A program made the position numbers and the translations under genes. The notes beneath the pieces were generated by a model, which made no database searches, was not told the DNA's origin, and worked only from the letters and a program-made list of their open reading frames with translations. Shown here piece after piece: positions 1-63,055 of a stretch of DNA of 64,000 bases. The stretch lies in NCBI RefSeq assembly GCF_030144855.1, contig NC_082728.1, positions 10,602,001 to 10,666,000 on the forward strand, read 5' to 3'. Every line of letters begins with the position of its first letter. Positions within the stretch are counted from its first letter, which is position 1. This DNA comes from Hypanus sabinus. Lineage: Eukaryota.

Positions 1-118
1 CAGAGGGAGGTGACGGGCAGGTAAGGAGACGAGGTGAGAGGGGGAAAACAGGAATGGGGAATGAAGGGCAGGAGGGAGTTGGGGTTGGCAATTACCGGAA
101 GTTAGAGAAATTAAACCA
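1..118 (-). mobile_element. Penelope-like element 3' fragment
   Basis: Ends in ...FSNFR* plus pyrimidine-rich tail, like the copy at 4485-5075. Confidence 0.6.
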
Positions 119-154
119 GCTCACCGATTCCTTCATCTGCAGCTGACTGAAGGA

Positions 155-590
155 ATCCGAATCATTACTGAAAGATGTTGTGAAATGTGCTGCACTGTGG
201 CAGCAGTAACAGCGCAATACATAACAACCAGAAGTGACAGAGAGAGAACAGGTAGTGTTCACGGGTTCACTGCCCATTCAGAAATCTGACGGCAGAGGGG
301 AAGAAACTGCTCCTAAAAAGCCTTTTGTGTGTATGCCTTCTGGTGGCTGTACTACTTCTTGATGGTAATGATGAGAACGGTAGCACGTCCTGGGCGGCAG
401 GGCCCTCAACGATGGATGCTGCCTTCTTGAGGCATCCCCTTTTGAAGATGTCCTCGATGGTATGGGGAGGCTAGTGCTTGTGAGGAAGCTGGATGAGTTT
501 GCAACGTCTCCACCCCTGTGCAGTGGCCCCCTCCCATACCGGACGAGAGATGCAACTGGTTAGGAAGCTCTCTGTGATACTATGGCGACA
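155..590 (-). mobile_element. Rex1/Babar-like LINE 3' fragment
   Basis: Similar to the 3' parts of the copies at 37770-38200 and 49850-50290. Confidence 0.55.
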
Positions 591-1447
591 TTCAGTACTA
601 CATTTCCTCAAACTCCTTGGAAGGAAACTGACATCAGACACCAGCCCTGCCCTCCGCCCAAGATATTTAAGTATTTTAATTATCCAGGAAATAAAAGGCA
701 CAAGTAGAAAGGACAGTCTGCCAGACTGGTTGAGTCAACAGGCAGGCTCACAGATGAATGCTAAATAGGCTAATCCACATCGACTGGATTAAACTGTCTG
801 GGAGAATTTCTGGCTCCCAGTCCTTCCAAAATCCTTCATCAGAATCAGGTTTGTTATCTAAACGAGATGCCACCTCCTTGAACGACGAGGAGGATGGAAT
901 CGTCAGTGAAACCAGAGGCAGCTTGAGCAAGTTTATTCCAGACGCTAGACAAACTCTTCCTTGGCTCTGCAGAGTGGGTGTAAACTCAGATCTGCTCCCA
1001 AATGGGATTTGGCGATGGTGAGAAATTTGCTGTTTTGCAGCAGCAGGAGAGCTGAGAGATAAAAAAAAATTACCAAAAGACAACTCCACCCTGTTAGCTG
1101 CAACATTGCACATCAACATCTGGGGCTTACCTCCCTTCCAAACAAATTTATAAAAAGATGTAGCAGTGCACTTCGCTGACTTCACCAAGCTAATCATTAT
1201 GTTTGTGTAGAGCGTCAACACCCCATCAACCCTTCAATCCCAATCACTTTAACAGCGGTAAATCCGGGTAGTTACGGCACACTGCGGAGGGAGGACTCCT
1301 TACCACAGACTTTCCCCACACTACCTATCGCCTGTTTCGCAACGGATGGGCGCAAAGGTGAAGGAAAAAGGTTTAAAGCAACCAGCAGAAGGATTAGGAA
1401 ATTACATCTCCCATTGCAAGTGGCTGGGAGAGGCAGGAACATTGAGG

Positions 1448-1940
1448 TACCTTCTGTGCATAATAAAGCAGCCACTGAGTGTATGTTTGCGGTCCTTTTG
1501 CTGTTGTGGCCCATCCACTTCAAGATTCAATTTGTTGTGCGTTCAGAGATGCTCTTCTGCACACCACTGTTATAACGTGTGGTTATTTGAGTTACTGTCA
1601 CCTTCCTGTCAGCTTGAACCAGTCTGGCCACTCTCCTCTGACCTCTCTCATTAACAAAGCGTTTTCACCCACAGAACTGCTGCTCACTGGATGTTTTTCC
1701 TGCACATGTTCTCTGTAAAATCTAGAGACTACTGTGCGTGAAAATCCCCGGAGATACTCAAAACCTACCCCATCTGGAACCAACAACCATTCCACGGTCA
1801 ATGTCACTCAGATCATATTTCTTCCCCGTTCTGATGTTTGGTCTGAACAACAACTGAACCTCTTGACCATGTCTGCATGCTTTTATGCATCGAGTTGCTG
1901 CCACATGATTGGCTGATTAGGTATTTGCATTAACAAGTTG
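1448..1940 (-). mobile_element. Tc1-like transposon derivative (N-terminal transposase remnant)
   Basis: GFSRTVVSRFYRE and KWMG remnants. Same family as 21867-22338. Confidence 0.8.
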
Positions 1941-3509
1941 ATGACCACTGCATGCTGAACAGTACAGGCCATTCAGCCCACAATGTTACACTGACCTTTT
2001 AACCTACTCCAAGATCAATCTAACCCTTCCCTACCATGTGGCCCCCATTTTTCTTTGTGACCTTGGTCACGTGGTCTTTCTCCGCCAGAGGCTTCAGTAA
2101 TTAAATTGTGGCTCTGTGCTTTGTAAACCCGAAACATTTTCAGATGGTCTGCTCGTAATATTTATTTACTGAGACCCAGAGCAAAATAGGTCCTTCCAGG
2201 CCTCAAAGTGGCGCAGACCGGCACCCCGCCTGATTTAATTCCAGCCTAATCACTGGACAATGACCAATTAACCTACCGTCCGGTACAACTTTGGACCGTG
2301 GGCGGAAACTGGAGCATCCGGAGGAAATCCACTTGGTCATAGAGAGAACGTACAAATTCCTTACAGTCTGCGGCAGGAAATGATCACAGCTCACTTGTAC
2401 TGTAAAATGCTGTACTAACCACTAAAGCATAGTAGACGAACAATAAACTGCTCGGGTTAGCCAGCTTATACTGGGATTTATTGACCGTATATTCCTCTTC
2501 TCATCCCCTTACAATCACAACATCAATCCCTACAAAGTCCCCTTCAAGATAACGAGTTCACTTAATCCCACATTGCATCCAATTTACTACTGCGTCCTGA
2601 ATTCCAAGGGACTGAAGCTTCTTGAGTAACCTCCCTTTGGGACTTGGTGAAGTCCATGTACACAACATCCACTGCCTTGCCTCCATTAACTTTTCTGGTA
2701 ACCTCCTTGAAAAAGAGCATTCCCCAGTGCCCTACCCTTCCCTGTGCAAGTCAATTTTACCAGGTAGGAGTGTAAACAAGAAGAAAACTGTATTAAAAGG
2801 GCACGGAATGTGGTTGGACAGGTTCCCCGATTCCGGATCGATCGCACCACGGTTAATCCTTCCAGTAAAAATGTTCCTCTCCCCTTCTCCTCGTCTTCCA
2901 TTCCTCACTCTAGCCTCTTCCCACCTGCCTATCACCTCCCCTGGTGCCTCATCCTACATTCCCTTTCTCCTAGGGTCCACTCTCCTTCTCCTATCAGATT
3001 CCTTCCTCTCCAGCCCTTTATCTTTCCCACGCACCTGGCTTCACCTATCACCATCCTTCCCCTCCCCCCCATCTTTTTATTCTGGCATCTTCCCTCTCCC
3101 TCTTCAGTGTCTTGGCTCGAAACACTGACTGTTAATTCATTTCCGTCTGTGCTGCCTGACCTGTTGAGTTCCTCCAGCACTTTGTGTGTGTGGCCCATCA
3201 GTAAATGCCTTCAGTCTTTAGTAATTGAGCCGAGAGGAGAGTGCACATTGAGGGAGAAAGAGAGGTACAAGGAGCAGACAAGGGGGTACGACAGAGCTGG
3301 AAGTTGGTACCTGCAAACATCCTGGGTCATGTGGGGGGGGGTTAATTACTGGCTAGGATCTTATGGTATCTGGAACCACGCAGCCTGCACTGGAGACCCC
3401 TTCCTCGACGTTTAATGAGCTACAGCAGGGTTAAATGGGAAACCACCAACAATACAAAAACAGAGGAAATTTAGAAAAACGTGTTTCTAGTTGAGACCCC
3501 CTATTCCGA

Positions 3510-3880
3510 AGGGTTATGACTGCGACCTGTCTAGTGGTACTTACCTCCAAATGGACCACAAGCTTGTCGTGGTTTGGAGGATTAGTGCCTCAATGACCTG
3601 GAGAGCTATACTGGCTGGAATCGGGGCATTACACTTTGACTCTCGGTAGGGTCACCAAGCCAAACATGTCAAAGGTTAGAGGCCAGACTAAGAGTGGTCC
3701 ACTGGTCCTCCAGGTTCGGGGTGGGGTTAGGGCTAACAACCTCGATCGGTCAAAAGAAATTGTTACGGAAACAGCAATGAAGAATCCTTCGACATCTGTG
3801 TGCAACAGTACGGACAGAATGAGATGGGGGACCCTCAATGCTGCCCTAAACACCAAGCAGTATAATGCGCAGTAACTCAC
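3510..3880 (+). mobile_element. RTE/Rex3-like 5'UTR-derived element
   Basis: ttgtcgtgg...ggtagggtcacc...gccaaaca.gtc...gaggccagac motif string recognised from RTE/Expander leaders. Confidence 0.45.
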
Positions 3881-4484
3881 AGTACGAGGGGAATTAAGAT
3901 AACGAGTCCAATATATTGGTTGTGTGTTGGCTGTTAACACGATACATTTCACCGTATGTTTCAATGTAAACCCGATAAATAAACTTGAATCTTGAAAATT
4001 CTTCAGATACTTCACAGTGCTAGGCCCTTTGGCCCATCAAGACCATGCTGACCAACCTTACTATGTGTATCTATACATGTTAATCCAAATTTAACTCTCC
4101 TCACACAGACTCATCGACTCACTCCTGATTCTATCATGTACCTACACATTAGGGGCAATTGACAAGGGCAAATTAACCTGCCAACCTGCACGTTTGGGAT
4201 GTCGGACGGAAGTAGAACACTCAGAGCGTGGAGCCCACAGGGAGAACGTGCCGACTTCAGAAGGAATATCGCGTTCAGTTCTGTTTGCTTCGTTTTAGGA
4301 AGCTTCGGTGAAGTTAGGGAAGAGATTTACCAGCATGCTGCCTGGATTACTGTGTTAGGACATATTTTGGAGCTAGGGTATGTAGCAAATATTAATTTCT
4401 ATACCAGTCTTCGGATCCAAATGTGGACTGCAGATGGAATTTACAAAGCAGGTCCTAGCTGCTGACTGGGGTTGATTGCAAACC

Positions 4485-5075
4485 GGGAAACACCTCTGCT
4501 CTGTCCGTCACAACAGACAGGATCTCCCGGTTGCCACCCACTTCAACTCTGCTTCACGTTCCCATTCGGATACGTCCATACACGGCCTCCTCTACTGCCA
4601 TGATGAAGCCAAACTCAGGTTGGAGGAGCAACACCTCCATATACCGTCTGGGTAGTCTCCAGCCCCTTGGTATGAACATCGAATTCTCCAACTTCCGGTA
4701 ATTCCCTCCCTCTCCCTTCCACCACCCCCCTTCACTCTGCCTCCTCCTCCAGCTGCCCATCACCTCTCTCATGATTCTGCCTTCTTCTACTACCCAAAGT
4801 GCTTTCCCCTTACATTCCTTCTTCACCTCTCCGGCCTATCCCCTCCCTGCTTCCCCTCCCCCACCCCTTGATCTTTCCTCTGATTGGTTGTTCACCTGCC
4901 ACTTTCCACCCCCCCACCTTCTTGCTAGGGCCCCTGCCCCCTCCAGTCCTGACGAAGGGTCTCAGCCTGAAACGTTGACTGCTCCTTTCAACAGATGCAG
5001 CCCGACCTGCTGAGTTCCTCCATCTTGTTTGTACGTGTTGATTTGACCCCAGCATCTGCAGTGTACTTTGTGTTT
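4485..5075 (+). mobile_element. Penelope-like retroelement 3' end (GIY-YIG C-terminus plus pseudo-LTR)
   Basis: Translates as HLCSVRHNRQDLPVATHFNS...RLEEQHL/YRLGSLQPLGMNIEFSNFR*, followed by a hammerhead-like motif. Confidence 0.8.
4944..4981 (+). ncRNA. Minimal type-I hammerhead ribozyme motif
   Basis: CAGTC-CTGACGA-AGGGTCTCAGCCT-GAAACGTT-GACTG: helix I arms, CUGANGA box, helix II hairpin, GAAA box, palindromic ACGT helix III. Confidence 0.65.
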
Positions 5076-5504
5076 ACTAAACACCTCACTGACCTGCCAC
5101 TTGATACAAGATGGGAAGAGGCACAGGTAGAGTGGATAGCCAGGGGCTTCTTCCCAGGACGGCAAAGGACATCCCTTTGAGGGAAGTATAGGAGGGATAA
5201 AAATACACACAGAGAGTGGCATGTGCTAGAACACGCTATCAGATTTGCTGGTAGAGGCTGGTACATCAGCGACATTTAAGGGACTCTTAGCTCAGTACAT
5301 GAATGAAAGAAAAATGGAGGGATATGCGGAATTGTCAGATTGACTGTGGAGTACGTTAAAGGGTCAGCACAACACTGTGGGCCGAAGGGCCTGTACCTTG
5401 CTGTGCTGTTCTAAGTTCACACAGACAGCAGCCTATGGCAGGATTGAACCAGGGTTACCAGAGCTTTGAGCTTGCAGCTGCACGAGCCACACCGGTGTGC
5501 CTCA

Positions 5505-5945
5505 TCTCTCAGTTTCCCATCTTTGTAATTCCTATTCCCGTTCTGACTTGTCGGACCACGGCCTCCTCTTGTGCCAGGATGCGGCCACCCTCAGGGTGGA
5601 GGAGCAACACCTAACATTCCACCTGGGCAGCCTCCAGCCTGACGGGTATGAATATCGATTTCTCCTTCCACTAAACAGATTTTCTCCTTCTCTTCCTTTA
5701 CTCCTCACTCTGAACTTACCTGCCTGTTACCTCCCTCGGGTCCTCTCTCCTCTCCTCCACCTTTCCCAGCTAGCCTCCTTTCCCCTCTCCCCCCCCCCAC
5801 CTTTTTATTCTGGCCTCTTCCCCCTTCCTTCTCAGTCCTGAAGAAGGGTCTTGGCCCGAAACATTGACCATCTACCCATTTCCACAGATGCTGCCTGGCC
5901 TGCTGAGTTCCTCCAGCATTTTGTGTGTGCTGCAGACTTCTTCGT
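5505..5945 (+). mobile_element. Penelope-like element 3' end
   Basis: HGLLLCQDAATLRVEEQHLTFHLGSLQPDG, then CTGAAGA...GAAA motif at 5838-5861. Confidence 0.8.
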
Positions 5946-6879
5946 GTTTAAAAGCTTCCTATCCACTCGCTTGGATATGCAAGGCTCGATTCCTCAACAA
6001 AATTAAAAGCCAGGATCCCACAGAACACCATCTGGGATACCAGACTGACAAAGAACTTTTCACTTCTATTAGGGATCCCTCAATACCTCAATTTCCTGAT
6101 AAGACAGTACTAATGCATAATCACACTTCCCATTTTTCCCCAAATGAAGCCATTCAGATGCATCATTGTTAAGGATTGTAAACACAAGAGGTTCTGCAGA
6201 TGCTGGAAATCCAGAGTAACACACACACACACGACGCTAGAGGAACTCAGCAGATCAGGCAGCATCTACGGAGGGGAACAAAGAATCAACTTTTCGGGCC
6301 GATGTCAAGACTGTTTTTTTTAAATATAAACAAGAGAAAAATCTGCAGATGCTGGAAATCTGAGCAACACACAGAGATAAAATGCTGGAGGAACTCAGCA
6401 GGCCAGGCAGCATCTGTGTCCTGCCGAAGGGGTTTGATGTTGACTGTACTTTTTTTCCCATAGATGCTGCCTGGCCTGCTGAGTTCCTCTGCACAATTTT
6501 CTTTCTCTGCGCACTGGGTGTAAATGACTTTTTAAAAATAGGTTCGATAGGGTTTCTTTGTTTTGTGGCTGCTGGTAAAGAGACGAGTCTCAACGCTGTA
6601 TAATGTATACATACTTTGATAATCAATGTAGTCTGAAATGAGGGGCACTCACGGGGCTTGACATCGCAATGGGATTTGAGCTCTGACAGATAAATCACTG
6701 ACGCGATTGCCTCCCAGCTTCAGGGTTCGGTGGATGAGCCACACCCTCTGCCGTGGAAAGACTAGTCACCCCCACCCAAACACCACCGTACGTCTCACAC
6801 ACACACATTTCATAATCTGCGGTGCAAACAACTTACATAGGAGAAGGGTGTTTTCTTGGCACCGTGCAGTATTTTTAAA

Positions 6880-7635
6880 ATCAAAATAATCTTTATTCAT
6901 AATAAAAATATTTACAAGAATAAACTGTGTGTGCAATGCCTTTCCATTCTTTACATTAATAATGAATGCATTAAGTACTGTTTGATTACATTTCTACAAA
7001 TCAATAGTACAGCCTCCTCTCATGTAGTCCTCTGGAAGATACACTCTACAGTAATTGAGGGGCTTTCTCTCCCAACCTGGTCCCTCCCTCCCAGTAGCAG
7101 AAGAACCCTACACTGTGGCTCTCCCCCACAGAGCCCTTGCGATGGCTGCACCCAGCTTCAGTGGGTCCCTGAGCACGTACTCCTGCAGCCTGGAACGTGC
7201 CAGAGAGCAACGTTCCTCTGTGCTACGGACTTCTCCGCGTGCTAGCAGACCAGCCAAGCTGATCGCCTGCCAGCAGTAGTTGATGCTCGTCCGTCCCTGG
7301 GAGCTGCCCGCAGATCAGAGAGTCATCTGTAGCACAGCTACCCAGGATGAACCGCGACGCAGGCCCTCTCGTCTTCCTCCACACCTTTTTCACAAACCCA
7401 CGGTCTGCAAGGAGACGAGCTACTGCCTCCTCCCCAAAGCAGCTATCCTCGTGGGGGGGCTCCATGCACGCGGGAAAGATGTGCCCGAGAGGACACTGTC
7501 ACCGCCAGTCTGGCAAGGTCTCAGTGACCTGGCTTCCTTCTCAGCCTATGGGAATGCAGCCAAAGAAAACAGATATTCCTAGTACCCAACCGTCACACCA
7601 CACGTTTTTCAGAAGGACGCCCACTAAGATACCTG
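6880..7635 (-). mobile_element. Tx1/L1-clade LINE 3' fragment
   Basis: Degenerate C-terminal zinc-binding region (CFGEEAVARLLADRGFVKKVWRK) and AATAAA-containing 3' end. Confidence 0.6.
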
Positions 7636-8074
7636 GCTGACAGTGAACAATTGCTATGCAGTTGTCTGCATCCACTTTTAACTCTTACATAGTTAAAAGC
7701 AGAATTAGCACCAAACCTGCCATACACACTACCATAAATAATGAAGAAATGAATACAATAATAGACCATTGGACACCATAGCAGAATGGGGCCATTCAGC
7801 CCATCAAGTCTGCTCTGGCATTCAATCACAACTGATTTTCCCCCTCAACCCCATTCTCTGCCTTCTCCCCATAATCTCTGACGCCCTTACTAATCAAGAA
7901 GTTATCAATCCCTGTTGTAAATACACCCAATGACTTGATCTCCACAGCCGTCTATGACGATGGATTCCACAGATTCACCACACTCTGGCTAAAGAAATTC
8001 CTCCTCAGCTCTGTTCTAAAGGGGTGTCCACGTATGCTGAGGCAGTGTCCTCTGATCCTAGACTCCCCCACTAT

Positions 8075-8355
8075 GGATGCCACGGTGGTGAGGCAGTTAG
8101 TGAGACGCCATTACAGCTCAGGGCATCGGAGTTCAGAGTTCAATCCCAGCATCCTCGGCGGAGTCCCTGTACATCCTCCCCGTGAAATGTGTGAGTTTCC
8201 TCCGGGTGCTCTGGTTTCCTCTCACAGTCCAAAGAAGTACCGGGTAGGTTAAGTGGTCATTGTGAATAGGTTAGGGTTAAATCGGGGTTGTCGGGGGGGG
8301 GGGGGGGGGGTTCGGAGGGCCTATTCCATGCTGTATCACTAAGTAAATAAATAAA
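8075..8355 (+). mobile_element. tRNA-derived V-SINE (HE1-like) inserted in a CR1 fragment (about 7760-8600, minus)
   Basis: Box A/B remnants, V-domain gtttcctccgggtgctctggtttcctc.cacagtccaaaga, (taaa)n tail. Confidence 0.7.
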
Positions 8356-9004
8356 CTATAGGAAACGATATGTCCATTCTACCATGGCCTTGTTTCAATG
8401 AGATCCCATCTCATTCTCCTAAACATCAGCGAGTACAGGCCCAGAAAATCAAAACACCCCTCGTCCATTAACCCTTTCATGCCTGGAACAATTCATCCTT
8501 TCCAATGCCAACTCATCTTTTCTTAAATATGGGATCCAAGACTGCTCACAATACTCTGAATGCAGTCTGACCAATGCCTAACAAACCCTTCAGCTTACAA
8601 GAACAAAAAAATCATTCTCACACGCGTTATCTATTTTATTATTTATCGAGATACAGCGCGGAATTCCAACTGCGCCGTCCGGCAAAATCCCGATTTAATC
8701 TGAGCACAGTCGCTGGACAATTTACGGTGACCAATTAGCTTACCAACCAGTACGTCTTTGGACTGTGGGGGGAAACCAGAGCACCTGTGGTCACGGGGAG
8801 TGGCAGGAATTGAACCCGGGTCACCTGTACTGTATTACATCGCACTAACCACTTCACTACCACGCCACCCCAGCTGAGCAGGTGTAACAGTCTGCCAAGG
8901 TGATTCTTTTGCGTCCAGGAACTGAATAAAATACATTTGCAAGTTTATCCCGTTGATCTTATAATGCAAAATGCCCACTTGTACATTTTACAATATTGTC
9001 ATAC

Positions 9005-9096
9005 CTTGAAACTGGTAAGTTCCTGCTCAGTAAATCCATGACTGTGAATTATCTTCATCTGCTTTACCAAGGTGCTCTTCCCACTTTCGGCCGCCC
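9005..9096 (-). CDS. gnav1: G-protein alpha subunit, Gv class, coding exon 2 ([31 protein letters not shown])
   Basis: ttgcag acceptor, phase-compatible with exon 1, P-loop [15 protein letters not shown] donor. Exon 3 not found in 1-9000, so it presumably lies left of the window. Confidence 0.92.
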
Positions 9097-10294
9097 CTGC
9101 AACACAAGGACACAGACATCAAACAGGAGGTTGGGTAGCCCCACCTTTCCCCAAGTTTGTTCGGCCTCTGGAAAGCTAATGCACTCCAACCCTGTTCTGC
9201 GATACAAGAGAGCTTTATTTGTCACACGCACATCGCAACACACAAACGTACAGTGAAACGCATCATTTTGCACCAACCACCAACGCAGTCTGAGGATTGT
9301 AACCCACAAATCTTGCCGACGTAGCACCCCCTGGTTTATTAACTTTCTTTGGAAAGTGGGAGGAAATCAGAGCACCCAGAGGAAACCCACGCGGTCACGT
9401 ACAAACTCCTTACCGGTGGGAAATGACCCCCGCATCGGTAATGGCTGGCGCTGTCAATTACACACACTATAGAAGAGTACAGGCCCTTCGGCCCACAATT
9501 TTATGATGACCTCTTAACCTACTCCAAGATCAATCTAGCCCTTCCCTCTTACCTAGCCCTCTGTTTTTCTTCCATCAATTTGCCCTCCAAAATCAACCTA
9601 ACCCTTCCTTCCTACACAGCCTCACACACAGAATGCTGGGGGAACTCAGCAGGCCAGGCAGCATCGGCAGGTCTGAACAAAGGGTCTCAGCCCGAAATGT
9701 CAACTGTACCTTTTTCTTCTTCCCATGGATGCTGCCTGGCCTGTTTCAGTTCTATATTTTTATTTCTGTTCTCGCCCATTCTTTCCTGTTGCTGATTGGT
9801 GGGTGAGAGGAGTTTATTCATTCCTCCAAATACTTTCAAATCATGCTCTCTTGTATTAGCCATTTCATTCCTGGAAAAGGATTTCTGGCCTCTCATCATC
9901 TTGCACACCTCTCATCCTCCTTTGCTCCAAAGAGAAGCTCTCGCTCATTCAACCCACCTTGATGATCCAGGCAGCATCCTGCACCCTCCCTAAAGCTTCC
10001 GTATCTCCCCTACAGTGAGACAATCAGAACTGAACACAATACTCTAAGACACAAGGAAATCTGCAGAAGCTGGAAATTTAAGCAACACACACAAAATGCT
10101 GGTGGAACGCAGCAGGCCAGGCAGCATCTACAGGAAGAAGTACAGTCGATGTTTCGGTCCAAGACCTGACATCAGAGACTACAGACCAGGCTGGGGGTGA
10201 TCCTGGTTGAAACACTGCTTAGAGACTACAGACGAGGCCTGGGGGTGTGGGGTAATCTTGGTTGGTGTGTCTTCCATGGAATCCAATAACAATG

Positions 10295-10570
10295 TTTTTA
10301 TTTATTGAGATACAGTATGGAATAGGCCTTTTGAGCCATGCTGCCCAGTAATCCCCCAAGTTAATCCTAGCCTAATCACAGGGCAATTTACAATGACCAA
10401 TTATTCTGCCAACCAGTCCATCTTTGGACTGTGGGAGGAAACCGCAGCACCCAGCGGAAACCCTCACGGTCACGGGGAGAACATACAAACTTCTTACAGG
10501 CAATGGCAGGAATTGGACCCAGGTTGTCCGCAGTGTAATGTGTTGTGCTGACCACTACGCTACCGTGCCA
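10295..10570 (-). mobile_element. tRNA-derived V-SINE (other copies about 2165-2425, 8635-8870, 9300-9450, 39585-39855 minus; 40735-40900 plus)
   Basis: GGCACGGTAGCGTAGTGG box A, GGTCCAATTCC box B, V-domain. Confidence 0.75.
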
Positions 10571-11370
10571 ATAGACAATAGGTGCAGGAGTAGGCCTTTC
10601 GGCTCTTCCAGCCAGCACCGCCATTCAGTCAGTACCCCGTTCCTGCCTTCTCCCCATATCCCTGGACTCCGCTATCTTTAAGAGCTCTATCTAACTCTTT
10701 CTTGAAAGCACCCAGAGAACTGGCCTCCACTGCCTTCTGAGGCAGAGCGTTCCATAGATCCACAACTCTCTGGGTAAAAAAGTTTTTCCTGAACTCCGTT
10801 CTAAATGGCCTACCCCTTATTCTTAAGCTATGGCCTCTGGTTCTGGACTCCCCCCAACATCGGGAACATGTTTCCTGACTCTAGCGTGTCCAATCCCTTA
10901 ATAATCTTATGTTTCAATCAGATCCCCTCTCATCCTTCTAAATTCCAGTGTATACAAGCCCAGTTGCTCCAATCTTTCAACATATGACAGTCCCGCCATC
11001 CTGGGAATCAACCTCATGAACCTATGCTGCACTCCCTCAATAACAAGAATGTTCTTCCCCAAAATTGGAGACCAAAACTGAACACAATAGTCCAGGTGTG
11101 GTCTCACCAGGGCCCTGTGAGGAGCCAAAGGACCTCTTTGCTCCTATACTCAACTCCCCTTGTTATAAAGGCCAGCATGCCATTAGCTTTCTTCACTGCC
11201 TGCTGTACCTACATGCTTACTTTCAGTGACTGATGAACAAGGACACCTAGATCTCGTTGTACTTCCCCTTTTCCTAACTTGACTCCATTTAGATAGTAAT
11301 CTGCCTTCCTGGTCTTGCCACCAAAGTGGATAACCTCACATTTATCCACATTAAACCTCATCTGCCAATG
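10571..11370 (-). mobile_element. CR1-type LINE 3' fragment
   Basis: WQMRFNVDKCEVIHFG, RDLGVLV, LVRPHLDYCVQFWSP, RLEQLGLYTLEFRRMRGDLIE. Confidence 0.9.
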
Positions 11371-11644
11371 AAGGAAATGTATTCGATCCTTTAATAAGAA
11401 ACTAACAAAACGAACAATCTTGAAGTGATACAACTAAAGGAATCCCTAAAACTAACAAAGTTAAACACATTCATCACCCTGACCTACTCCCTAATTCTAA
11501 ACTGACTAGAATGACTCTAAACAGCACAAACATATAATTAAATCTCTCCACATCTACCACACCCCCGCCCACGTGACTCACTACTATAATAAACATAATG
11601 AACACAATTAAAAACAGGCGCATGCCTCTTGCTCCACAGTACTG

Positions 11645-12265
11645 GACACAAAATGCTGGAGGACTCAGCAGGTCAGGCAGCATCTACGGAGAGGAATAAA
11701 GAGCTGACGTGTCAGATGACGACCCTTCATCTGGACTGGAAAGGAAAGGGGAAGAATAAGGATGTGGGGGGCAGGAGGAGCACTGCAGGCTCGAAGGTGG
11801 CAGGTGAGGGGAAGGTAGGTGGGTGGGGAAGGGGGGAATGCAGTGAGGAGCTGGGAGGTGATACATGCAAAAGGTGAAGGGTTGAAGGAGGAATTGGATA
11901 GGAGAAGAGAATAGACTGTGGGAGAAAGGGAAGGAGGAGGAGCACCAAAGGGAGGGGCAGGTGAGAAGAGAAGGGGTAAGTGGGGAGCCAGAGTGGAGAA
12001 CGAATAAAAAACGGAGGGGGAGGCCGGGAGAAATTACTGGAAGTTGGTGAAATCAATGTTCACGTAATCAGGTTTGAGGCTAAACAGACGGGATGAGGTG
12101 TTCAGCATCGAGGACGAGGTCTCAATACAAGATAATTCAGAATACTAGATAATCTGCAGATGCTGGAAATCCAGAGCAACACACACACAATGCTGGAGGA
12201 ACTCAGCAGGTCAGGCAGCAACTACGGAAATGAACGAACAGTCGACGTTTTGGGCCAAGTCCCTT
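11645..12265 (-). mobile_element. Penelope-like element ends (tandem pseudo-LTR pieces)
   Basis: Reverse-complement similarity to 4485-5075, degenerate hammerhead motif near 11705-11740. Confidence 0.7.
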
Positions 12266-14387
12266 TATCAGACAAGCTGATTAAATATAGTTGCAAGTGT
12301 AACAGCCACGTAGCCCTGTTGTCTCTGATCTCATCCAGAATCCATTGCTTAGGGATCTCTGAGTAAATTGAGATTGCTTAGTAGGCAATTAATGTGTCAA
12401 TATAAACACAACAAAGTCTGTAAATGCTGGAAATCCAAAGCAACAAACACAAAATTCCAGAGGAACTCAGCAAATCAGACAGCACCTATGGAAATAAATA
12501 AGCAATTGATGCCTATGTGTTACTAATGGGTTAACATTTGAACCATTTCATTTCCTCCCTCTCCTTCTAAAAGTTCGTAGTTTTTGGCATTTTAATGCTC
12601 TCAATTAAGTACTGAATGACGAACTTTAAAGACAAATTTTGAAATGAAGTGATGTTTGTGTTGAGAGGCAAGCCAGTGCCCCTCACAAGTTTCTCATTTA
12701 GTCCTATAATAGTGTCAGTCATGCTTTCCACCGTCACTAGTATTTACTGAATGCTTATTTGATACACACAATAGTCTCCCTTATTGCCTCATTGGATTAT
12801 TCTTAGTCAATGAGACAGAAAAGTCAGCTGAAGCTGGTTGCCTCAAATTAATAAATAATAAGAGATTCTGCAGGTGACCGAAATCCAGAGCAACATACAA
12901 AATGTAGGAGGGGCTCAGCAGGTCAGAGACAAGCCGGACCATTTAATTCCCGGATGTGTTGGTGCCAAGATGAGGCCACCCTTATCTTTTACCTCTTCTC
13001 ACCCGCCTATTACTTCCCTGAGGTGCCCCTCCTCCTTCCCTTTCTCCTCGGGTCCTCTCCTTTGAGATTCTTTCCTCTCCAGCCCTCGACTTTTCCCGCC
13101 CACCAGGCTTCACGCTTCACCTTCCACCTTCCTATCCCGGCACCCTTTCCAGCCCCAGGGAAGGGTCTCAGCCCGAAATGTCATCTATTCACTTCCATCG
13201 ATGCGGCCTGATCTGCGGAATTCCTGCAGCATTCTGCAAGTGTTACTTCGGAGTTCCAGCGTCGGCAGTTTACCGGAAAAGCCAGCATCCGTGGGGAGGG
13301 GAATACACGGTCAGGCCGAGACCCTTCATCAAATCCTGAGGGGGTAGACCTCCCCCTCACCTGGTCTCACTCATCACCTGCCATCTTGCACTCCTCCCCC
13401 CCTCCCCACCTTCTTATTCTAGTTTCCACCCCCCCAACACTTCCTCTCCAGTGCTGATGAAAAGTCTGCGGACCGCTCCATAACTGATGCCTGACCTACC
13501 GAGTTCCCCCAACATTTTATGTGTTGACTCAAATTTATGTTTAGCGACTTTAAGAAACTGAGTCTTGATAATCTAAAGAATTTTTTTTAACTTTCTAATC
13601 ATAAACGATACGCACTGGAACTCAAACATTGGCTACAATACAAAAGTTCTATTATCACTGTCGCCCTTATCACCGCCAAATGACGAATGTTTCCACTGTC
13701 AATATTTTCCAATTCATTCACTCGACGGGAGGTCTTTACCCGTTTAAATAATTGGGGTTGTGTTTCAAAGGACATACATGTCACCCCGCGATTCATTTTC
13801 TTGCGGGCTTTCACAGTAAACACGACAGAATCATTGCAAGACCGCGCCCAACAAGACGGACAACAGCCATCGTGCAAAAAAAAACCCCTGCAAATACAAA
13901 AATAAATAAACAATAAGTATCGAGAACATGAGACGAAGAGCCTTTTAAGTTGTGGCAGCAATTCAGTGATGGGGCGAGTGAAGTTATCCCCTCTGGTTCA
14001 AGAACCTGATGGTTGAGGGGTAAGAACTGTCCTTGAACGTGGTGGAGCGGGTCCCGAGGCTCCCGAACCACCTTCCTGGTGGCAGCAGCGAGATCCGAGC
14101 ATAACCTGGGAGGTGGGGGCGTTGATGGGTGCGACGGCGTTCCGTGGAGATGTGCTCAGCGGTGGGGAAGGCTTTGCTTCACCTACGCAAAATGCATGGA
14201 ATAATTTGAGAAAGAATGCAAAGCGGGGAGGAGAGAGCAGATACCTCGCCTAAACCACTCCAATGAAAACCAAATTGTGACGGGAGTCAAACCGTAACTA
14301 TGTATACGGAGCTCAAAATAGCAGGGTAAAAGTAATATCTAGCATTGCCGGCAACCTACACACTGGAACCAACAATCTTTTACTGAC

Positions 14388-14517
14388 CTAGCAGCAAAAT
14401 TTTCACCACGTTCAACTCTTGTTTGGCATATTCATAGAGAGCGCGGTCAATCTTGTCGCTGCGGAGCCGCGCCTGCCGTTCCTCGGCGCTGCTCTCCGAT
14501 CCCAGGCACAGTCCCAT
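14388..14517 (-). CDS. gnav1: G-protein alpha subunit, Gv class, coding exon 1 (MGLCLGSESSAEERQARLRSDKIDRALYEYAKQELNVVKILLLG)
   Basis: MG..C acylation-type N-terminus, S..ID..L helix, KILLLG strand, phase-1 donor GTCAGT. MGLCLGSE and LYEYAK.ELNVVKILLL match fish Gv as I recall it. Confidence 0.9.
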
Positions 14518-14689
14518 TGCCGCCGACCATTTCTTCCCCAAGTGGAAGGTAGCGAGCTGAGGTGGGATGAATCTCTCCTGTGCCCCTGCACCCCACCCTC
14601 TCTGACTTCAGGAGCAGTCCCTCTTCCCCCCCTTCACTTCCCCGGACTTGCACGTGTCCTCATGTTGCTCCGTCGCGCATCAAAACTTT

Positions 14690-14800
14690 GTTTCCTTCTC
14701 CGCCCGCGCCTCCCGAAAGTTTAAACCGCTGGCGCCCTAGTTACACTAGGAAACATCCCCGGTCAAACTCAGAGGAAATGACGTCGGCCTGTGGAGGCTT
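14690..14800 (-). promoter_or_regulatory. Putative gnav1 promoter
   Basis: CpG-rich block, TTTAAA near 14722, X-box-like GTTTCCTAGTGTAAC (14754-14740), GGAAATGACGTC ETS/CRE-like motif (14774-14785). Confidence 0.5.
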
Positions 14801-21450: not shown

Positions 21451-60815
<39,365 letters not shown>

Positions 60816-61728: not shown

Positions 61729-63055
61729 ACCTGGACAAGCCGGCGAGCACTGTGAGGGTCATGTTTTTTGACTTCTCCAGTGTGTTCAACACCATCCGCC
61801 CTGCTCTGCTGGGTGAGAAGCTGACAGTGATGCAGGTGGATGCTTCCCTGGTGTCGTGGATTATTGATTACCTGACTGGCAGACCACAGTACGTGCGCTT
61901 GCAACACTGTGTGTCAGACAGAGTGGTCAGCAGCACTGGGGCTCCACAGGGGACTGTCCTGTCTCCCTTTCTCTTCACCATCTACACCTCGGACTTCAAC
62001 TACTGCACAGAGTCTTGCCATCTTCATAAGTTTCCTGCTGACTCTGCCATAGTTGGATGCATCAGCAAGGGAGATGAGACTGAGTACAGGGCGACGGTGG
62101 GAAACTTTGTCACATGGTGTGAGCAGAATCATCTGCAGCTTAATGTGAAAAAGACTAAGGAGCTGGTGGTTGACCTGAGGAGGGCCAAGGCACCGGTGAC
62201 CCCTGTTTCCATCCAAAGGGTCAGTGTGGACATGGTGGAGGATTACAAGTACCTGGGGATACGAATGGACAATAAACTGGACTGGTCAAAGAACACTGAG
62301 GCTGTCTACAAGAAGGGTCAGAGCCGTCTCTATTTCCTGGGAGACTGAGGTCCTTTAACATCAGCCGGATGATGCTGAGGATATTCTACGAGTCTGTGGT
62401 GGCCAGTGCTATCGTGTTTGATGTTGTGTGCTGGGGCAGCAGGCTGAGGGTAGCGGACACCAACAGAATCAACAAACTCATTCGTAAGGCCAGTGATGTT
62501 GTGGGGGTGGAGCAGCAGGCTGAGGGTAGCAGACACCAACAGAATCAACAAACTCATTCGTAAGGCCAGTGATGTTGTGTGCTGGAGCAGCAGGCTGAGG
62601 GTAGCGGACACCAACAGAATCAACAAACTCATGCGTAAGGCCAGTGATGTTGTGGGGGTGGAACTGGACTCTGACGGTGGTGTCTGAAAAGAGGATGCTG
62701 TCCAAGTTGCATGCCATCTTGGACGATGTCTCCCATCCACTCTATAATGTACTGGTTAGGCACAGGAGTACATTCAGCCAGAGACTCATTCCACCGAGAT
62801 GCAGCACTGAGCAACATAGGAAGTCATTCCTGCCTGTGGCCATCAAACTTTACAACTCCTCCCTCAGAGTGTCAGACACCCTGAGTCAATAGGCTGGTCC
62901 TGGCCTAATTTCCACTTGGCATTATTTACTTATTATTTAATTATTTATTGTTTTATATTGCTATATTTCTACACTATTCTTGGTTGGCGCGACTGTAACA
63001 AAACCCAATTTTCCTCGGGATCAATAAAGTATGTCTGTCTGTCTTGCCTGTCTGT
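61729..63055 (+). mobile_element. Young 5'-truncated Rex1/Babar LINE with internal 75-76 bp triplication
   Basis: FFDFSSVFNTI, GAPQGTVLSPFLF, KFPADSAIVG (catalytic DD broken), AATAAA plus (tctg)n tail. Near-identical to 47963-49173. Confidence 0.93.

Follow-up and report, generated by a model that had tools for sequence, protein, structure and literature searches.

Coding exons 1 and 2 of gnav1, a fifth-class G-protein alpha gene, in the stingray Hypanus sabinus

Two short open stretches on the minus strand of a Hypanus sabinus contig raise the question of which gene they belong to, and whether this gene is new, intact, and placed in the right class. A first-pass annotation of the 64-kb window—the whole stretch of DNA that was analyzed—had read them as the start of a hidden gene for a G-protein alpha subunit of the class Gv. 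This class has been on record since 2009 (Oka et al. 2009, as cited in PMC5896119); a catalogue of its distribution and gene structure followed in 2018 (PMC5896119). Our answer is that the two stretches are almost certainly coding exons 1 and 2 of gnav1, the gene for the fifth-class G-alpha Gv and a single-copy orthologue of the zebrafish gene of the same name, in the Atlantic stingray. The structure of its exons, its membership in the Gv class, its orthology, and its synteny are demonstrated in the following sections; its possible function is treated thereafter.

Exon structure and 5′ region

Coding exon 1 occupies positions 14388–14517 on the minus strand (130 nt; codons 1–43 and the first base of Gly44), beginning at 14517 with the A of the ATG and ending at the donor CTAG/GTCAGT. 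An in-frame stop lies 31 codons 5′ of this position with no in-frame ATG in between; hence, 14517 is the first possible start. The exon is followed by intron 1 (9097–14387, minus strand; 5,291 nt, GT...AG, phase 1) and by coding exon 2 (9005–9096, minus strand; 92 nt, codons 44–74), which was located by tblastn with four chondrichthyan Gv proteins. Exon 2 bears the acceptor ...ttgtgttgcag/G, preceded by a pyrimidine tract, and the donor CAAG/GTATGA. Spliced together, both exons give 222 nt that translate without a stop into 74 residues, whereby the junction falls inside the codon of Gly44 (phase 1) and the end of exon 2 is in phase 0. The proposal of two minus-strand exons that splice in phase is thereby confirmed to the base, including the GT/AG sites and the 74 residues quoted for it.

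Exon 1 encodes the acylation motif MGLC, the αN helix, strand β1, and the first glycine of the P-loop; exon 2 encodes the P-loop GAAESGKST, helix α1, linker 1, and the start of the helical domain, with ...LTSFK as last residues. The absence of the gene from the track of open reading frames, which had been noticed from the outset, is explained by these short exons: the frame of exon 1 runs for only 45 codons between the ATG and the first stop in the intron, which is below the usual length cutoff of such tracks. Sequencing runs guessed to be RNA—their type is uncertain—contain 50–77% of the exon 1 words. For a 5.8 kb stretch, the shares in sequencing runs reach at most 0.27 and scatter over many organisms; they are read as shared interspersed repeats and as uninformative.

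Upstream of the start codon, positions 14518–14800 (minus strand) probably comprise the 5′ UTR and the core promoter, with a GC content of 0.57–0.59 and a CpG observed/expected ratio of mostly 0.8–1.0. This extent is deduced from the public record, in which 6.9 kb separate gnav1 from the upstream gene, together with the position of the last exon of that gene, pcyt2. At 14530, a well-contexted, out-of-frame ATG opens an upstream reading frame of 27 codons that overlaps the gnav1 start codon. If located inside the 5′ UTR, this ATG could damp the translation of gnav1.

Orthologues and public annotation

The peptide is identical over 74/74 residues to the start of the RefSeq protein XP_059804338.1 (G protein alpha v1 isoform X1, 361 aa, Hypanus sabinus; GCA_030144855.1), and tblastn aligns exon 1 with the same gene at 44 of 44 positions. 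As the exons of the window show no detectable difference from this record, both are most likely the very same gene. Identity amounts to 73/74 toward three other rays and a sawfish and to 63/74 toward skates and a chimaera, a pattern of strong purifying selection on exons 1 and 2. The suggested elasmobranch origin holds; the peptide nests in the ray Gv clade (see below).

The gene is not hidden, though, as had been claimed: at least 16 chondrichthyan species, Hypanus sabinus among them, already have a gnav1 named in their NCBI annotation. It is a known, ordinary gene of this stingray. As a gene discovery, the exons described here are thus of little weight, since RefSeq bears gnav1 in many sharks, rays, skates, and a chimaera; what they illustrate is that a gene with short exons can be recovered and correctly classed by a reader of the raw sequence.

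The remainder of the gene

The window covers 74 of the 361 codons of gnav1 (20% of the coding sequence), in exons 1 and 2 only. In positions 1–9004 (minus strand), which form the first 9 kb of intron 2 as judged by tblastn and the public gene range, no further gnav1 exon was detected when four chondrichthyan Gv proteins of full length served as queries (tblastn, word size 2, E up to 10). The public range of Hypanus sabinus gnav1 measures 107,394 nt; exons 3–9 are hence placed past the left end of the window. In the public protein, the sequence continues after ...FK with PAVLDNLL, just as had been predicted for the opening of exon 3. Nine coding exons, with the ancestral exon 7 divided into exons 7 and 8, would be expected of a GNAV gene; gnav1 of the pufferfish Takifugu gives nine tblastn blocks.

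The lack of an exon 3 within the window is also what would be expected from a 5′ remnant or a decaying pseudogene, in which exons 1 and 2 were kept and the rest of gnav1 was disrupted or lost. We regard this as very improbable and reject it: the public 361-residue model spans about 107 kb, carries no low-quality flag, and is identical to the window in its first 74 residues. Furthermore, the splice sites are intact, the synteny described below is conserved, and the near-invariance across rays and the 63/74 identity to skates and chimaera speak for purifying selection rather than decay. The description of gnav1 as intact holds for the splice sites and the reading frame of exons 1 and 2, whereas for the full length it depends on the 361-aa model of the public record.

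Assignment to the Gv class

That the peptide is the N-terminus of a heterotrimeric G-alpha, as proposed, follows from its match to the Pfam G-alpha family PF00503, which scores 59.8 bits over residues 19–73 and exceeds the curated cutoff of 48.8 (E=3.4e-16). The best match in a search of 1.84 billion proteins reaches E=2e-30; both values place the likeness to G-alpha far beyond chance. The P-loop (G1 box, GxxxSGKS/T) is present after strand β1 as G44-A-A-E-S-G-K-S-T52. In the same search, the top matches carry the NCBI name "alpha v1", with 77–82% identity to the closest teleost proteins. The peptide scores 112–119 bits for such "alpha v1" proteins vs 55–65 bits for Gi-class PDB chains.

The main competitor to a Gv assignment is a paralogue of the Gi/Go/Gz class whose N-terminus merely resembles Gv. 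It could draw on the Gi-family chains being the best matches among solved structures, on exon 1 ending at the same position in Gi2, and on the NCBI name "G(o) subunit alpha-like" that several orthologues bear. However, the latter is an automatic label, and the proteins so named fall within the Gv clade. In a maximum likelihood tree, the peptide is placed in a myliobatiform clade (support 99/96), inside chondrichthyan Gv (100/99) and vertebrate Gv (100/99), with Gi and Gz separated from Gv at 100/99. An AU test against a placement of the peptide with Gi and Gz gives a delta lnL of 98.6 and a p-AU of 1.4e-28. The references for other classes came from a search seeded with a Gz protein that yielded Gz and Gi and no Go, Gq, Gs, or G12, and the tree hence tests directly only the Gi/Gz rival.

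Two further characters bear on the class. First, the stingray peptide contains the motif ILLLGAAESGK, which has been reported to occur only in Gv and to bridge exons 1 and 2 in zebrafish (PMC11087313); in the stingray it likewise crosses this border, which lies within Gly44. The AAE-type P-loop (GAAESGKS) occurs in 122 of the 133 motif-bearing proteins on the Gv list vs none of 110 on the Gz/Gi list; the exceptions among the former are the second teleost paralogue, fusions, and mis-predicted isoforms. Second, the position of intron 2 in GNAV differs from that in GNAI (PMC5896119). In the stingray, it coincides with the Takifugu gnav1 position (after ...FK) and is located 20 codons 3′ of that in Gi2, where exon 2 ends after KQMK. 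By AU test, intron 2 position, and P-loop, the Gi-class and Gz-class readings are refuted, and the probability left to any Gi/Go/Gz paralogue is negligible. Database search, tree (with its Gi/Gz references), AU test, diagnostic peptide, and intron 2 thus agree on Gv over Gi/Go/Gz, in accordance with the original class assignment.

Genomic neighborhood

Directly upstream of gnav1 and on the same strand, the window contains pcyt2 (ethanolamine-phosphate cytidylyltransferase; 22936–43216, minus strand), which serves as synteny anchor. Exons were seen at 43216–43121, 39328–39242, 27288–27083, and 22989–22936; they match the Pfam domain CTP_transf_like (E=6e-8), and their fragments are 88–90% identical to human PCYT2 (PDB 3ELB). 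The public Hypanus record likewise shows a same-strand upstream gene with a CTP_transf_like domain (a 390-aa cytidylyltransferase) after a gap of 6.9 kb, with which the last mapped pcyt2 coding exon at 22,989–22,936 is compatible when UTRs are allowed for. In the Takifugu record, the same-strand gene upstream of gnav1 has the same domain. The conserved neighbor supports the orthologous genomic position of gnav1, and the identity of the locus is fixed: pcyt2, then gnav1. For a segmental duplicate of the gnav1 5′ end away from the true locus there is nothing specific in favor, and the spacing to pcyt2 as well as the finding that only one contig carries the gnav1 protein leave it next to no probability.

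Proposed function

Acylation of the product, the structural roles of its parts, its switch mechanism, its expression, and any osmoregulatory role in rays are matters that we infer. By homology to other G-alpha proteins, the 74 residues would form the membrane-anchoring and nucleotide-binding front of a G-alpha switch. Gly2 and Cys4 are predicted acylation sites, the αN helix would contact G-beta-gamma and the receptor, and the P-loop G44-A-A-E-S-G-K-S51 would hold the phosphates of GTP; strand β1, helix α1, and the start of the helical domain would complete this part. The seven remaining exons of the gene of about 107 kb lie outside the window. The public protein that shares this N-terminus also has the switch regions, the G3–G5 boxes, and the C-terminal helix for receptor contact, all of which are encoded by exons 3–9. 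Downstream of a GPCR, Gv would alternate between a heterotrimer with bound GDP and an active state with bound GTP.

Functional data for the class come solely from a zebrafish mutant, which links Gv to the control of ion-transporter expression and to ion balance (PMC11087313); the tie to ion homeostasis that the first-pass annotation had named matches this work. An action of Gv in elasmobranch osmoregulation is speculation. One residue of the P-loop might give it a more specific form: at A46 of the stingray protein, Ala is shared by every gnav1 orthologue examined, from chimaera to teleosts, whereas Gi, Gq, and Gs have Gly. We take this position to correspond to Gly42 in G-alpha-i1 and to Gly12 in Ras. 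Perhaps, A46 makes Gv slow in hydrolysis and poorly sensitive to RGS proteins, and such a switch might couple a receptor to the expression of ion or urea transporters in kidney, gill, or rectal gland of a euryhaline ray—an idea that we consider rather unlikely as it stands. Hypanus sabinus itself is euryhaline; if the idea is true, the locus would open a way to study an orphan G-protein class under unusual osmoregulatory conditions.

Comparison with known systems

Gv shares its fold family (Pfam G-alpha) with the G-alpha i/o/z/t family and also the N-terminal acylation pattern of Gly2 and a nearby Cys. The end of exon 1 is likewise common to Gi2 and stingray gnav1. No solved structure of Gv was found in a search of solved structures; the closest to full-length Gv are Gi-family chains at 312–340 bits. 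On the other side, Gv forms a clade separate from Gi and Gz, intron 2 of Gv is located 20 codons further downstream, and the P-loop of Gi bears a second Gly where Gv has Ala. The C-termini differ as well: Gi carries a Cys four residues from its end, which is the pertussis-toxin site, whereas the public Gv protein ends in ...EAVSLL without a Cys at this position.

Within Gv, rays bear a single type, whereas euteleosts possess a second, divergent paralogue whose N-terminus is extended and whose P-loop varies. The gnav1 gene of Takifugu matches the stingray at both exon borders (...LLLG and ...FK/PAVLDNLL) but measures 10.7 kb compared with 107 kb, making the ray gene about ten times longer. Zebrafish gnav1 has the N-terminus MGLCLGSE in common with the stingray—the zebrafish residues being deduced from a guide-RNA target—and, as in the stingray, carries ILLLGAAESGK across its exon 1/2 border.

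Two coding exons of gnav1

The first-pass annotation had proposed that two minus-strand exons splice in phase into the N-terminus of a G-alpha protein, and rebuilding them by script from the minus strand reproduced this exactly. Exon 1 (14517–14388, 130 nt) opens with the ATG at 14517 and has GTCAGT on its 3' side; exon 2 (9096–9005, 92 nt) has a pyrimidine tract and CAG on its 5' side and GTATGA on its 3' side. Joined, they comprise 222 nt or 74 codons with zero stops; the codon of Gly44 is divided between them (phase 1), and the end of exon 2 is in phase 0. An in-frame stop is located 31 codons 5' of the ATG, with no in-frame ATG between. Counted from the ATG, the exon 1 frame runs into its first intronic stop after only 45 codons—hence its absence from a length-filtered ORF list. 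An out-of-frame upstream ATG at 14530 (minus strand), 13 nt 5' of the start codon and in good context (GAAGAAATGG), opens a candidate 27-codon uORF that overlaps the gnav1 start.

With four full-length Gv proteins of chondrichthyans as tblastn queries, no gnav1 exons other than these two turned up in the window; hence, intron 2 exceeds 9 kb, and exons 3–9 lie beyond the left end. In the public record of the Hypanus protein, the gene covers 107,394 nt; it is this 361-residue model, and not the DNA of the window, that supports an intact gene. Some small sequencing runs, of a type guessed to be RNA, contain 50–77% of the words sampled from exon 1 and the 180 nt upstream of it, which is weak evidence at best for expression.

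Assignment to the Gv class

Judged by its sequence, the 74-residue peptide is a G-alpha subunit: the Pfam G-alpha profile covers residues 19–73 (E=3.4e-16, above the curated threshold), and solved G-alpha chains match up to E=1e-24. A full HMMER scan of 1.84 billion representative proteins placed NCBI-named "G protein alpha v1" of Sebastes (82% identity) and Poecilia (77%) at the top—with a low-quality Gadus model of the same name ranking lower (64%)—and a full-length teleost Gv as seed recovered the family across fishes, cartilaginous fishes included. The peptide is identical in 74/74 residues to Hypanus sabinus gnav1 isoform X1 (XP_059804338.1), in 73/74 to Hemitrygon, two Mobula species, and Pristis, in 66–70/74 to sharks, in 63–65/74 to skates, and in 63/74 to Callorhinchus. 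It also carries Thr71, which among the compared Gv proteins is exclusive to the Hypanus protein.

Besides the peptide, the maximum-likelihood tree drew on 40 full-length sequences, comprising 14 proteins named Gv, nine Gi, five Gz, and two divergent teleost paralogues, plus outgroups from sponge, choanoflagellate, and fungus and some unnamed ones; Go, Gq, Gs, and G12 references were absent. Here, the peptide stands beside Hypanus Gv in a clade of myliobatiform rays (support 99/96), within chondrichthyan Gv (100/99) and vertebrate Gv (100/99), separate from a Gi+Gz clade (100/99). Forcing it into one clade with Gi and Gz costs 98.6 log-likelihood units (p-AU 1.4e-28), so that the phylogeny bears out the proposed Gv class against Gi/Gz. 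In a sea cucumber, a protein named "G(o)" likewise lands on the Gv side, and the Gi with Gi.

The gnav1 finding is correct, yet was known beforehand. NCBI names the Hypanus sabinus gene gnav1 and annotates it, mostly under this name, in rays and skates (Hemitrygon, two Mobula species, Pristis, Amblyraja, Leucoraja, Rhinoraja) as well as in Heptranchias, Chiloscyllium, Hemiscyllium, Stegostoma, Cetorhinus, Carcharodon, Mustelus, and Callorhinchus; the literature already covers the Gv class, including its gene structure and its loss from both tetrapods and lampreys.

Gene neighborhood

In the public Hypanus record, the upstream neighbor of gnav1, on the same strand and ending 6.9 kb away, codes for a cytidylyltransferase-like protein of 390 residues. 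At its expected site, we mapped four minus-strand exon segments of pcyt2, which encodes ethanolamine-phosphate cytidylyltransferase, within 22936–43216 (43216–43121, 39328–39242, 27288–27083, and 22989–22936; 78–90% identity to human PCYT2 fragments), all lying downstream of its 5' exons. The Takifugu gnav1 locus (1–14479) is arranged alike: gnav1 stands between an upstream cytidylyltransferase-like gene, presumably pcyt2, and a gene of the neuropeptide B/W family. Having such an upstream neighbor in the window, the Hypanus record, and Takifugu speaks for orthology and makes a stray duplicate less likely. Human PCYT2 and NPB adjoin each other on 17q25.3; hence, the disappearance of GNAV from tetrapods might reflect its clean removal from between the two.

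Elsewhere, a minisatellite at 59443–60606 (~25 copies of a 45–47 bp unit, 78–86% matches) accounts for long artefactual ORFs at 59108–60728. Two related, truncated LINE reverse-transcriptase fragments lie in opposite orientation at 48328–49267 (minus) and 61752–62345 (plus), each with Pfam RVT_1 and a short 'ALKBH8_N' motif.

Proposed function

By homology with solved Gi-family structures, Gly2 and Cys4 would serve lipid anchoring, followed by the alpha-N helix, strand beta-1 (VKILLLG), the phosphate-binding loop, helix alpha-1, and the first turn of the helical domain; as a whole, the protein would act as a receptor-activated GTP switch. Ala46 of the P-loop presumably takes the position of the Gi, Gq, and Gs glycine equivalent to Ras Gly12, and a slower GTPase is, from this substitution, conceivable. 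Both acylation sites are mentioned in PMC11087313, which states that no receptors or effectors of Gv have been identified. The link to ion homeostasis that the first-pass annotation put forward holds for zebrafish—its scope being that species, not rays: in the mutant fish, Ca, Mg, and K are reduced, and atp1a1a.5, ncx1b, slc12a3, and slc26a4 change in expression (PMC11087313).

Comparison with known G-alpha genes

The 10-residue Gv P-loop motif was present in 122 of the 133 motif-bearing Gv-list proteins and 0 of the 110 Gz/Gi proteins among those fetched, the Gv-list exceptions being a second teleost paralogue, fusions, and mis-predicted isoforms. This euteleost paralogue (P0258, P0269, P0271, P0281, and P0285 among the fetched proteins), named 'G(o)-like' by NCBI, bears a 15-residue N-terminal extension (MFCCLN...), and its P-loop varies (VAE, TAE, AGE), whereas gnav1 has an invariant AAE. 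In the predicted Chiloscyllium isoforms X1 and X3 (P0291, P0295), 26 additional residues separate ...ILLL from AAESGKS where exons 1 and 2 meet, breaking up the P-loop; they probably stem from a mis-predicted extra exon or a retained intron fragment.

According to PMC5896119, the coding sequence of GNAV in jawed vertebrates is spread over nine exons, and intron 2 sits elsewhere than in GNAI. In Takifugu gnav1, exon 1 ends ...LLLG and exon 2 ...FK, followed by PAVLDNLL, both borders being identical to those in the window; in flounder Gi2, the exon 1 end is shared (...LLLG), but exon 2 stops at KQMK, 20 codons short of the Gv border. The tryptic peptide ILLLGAAESGK is reported to be unique to Gv and to span the zebrafish exon 1/2 border (PMC11087313)—and it is encoded exactly across the same border of gnav1 in the window.
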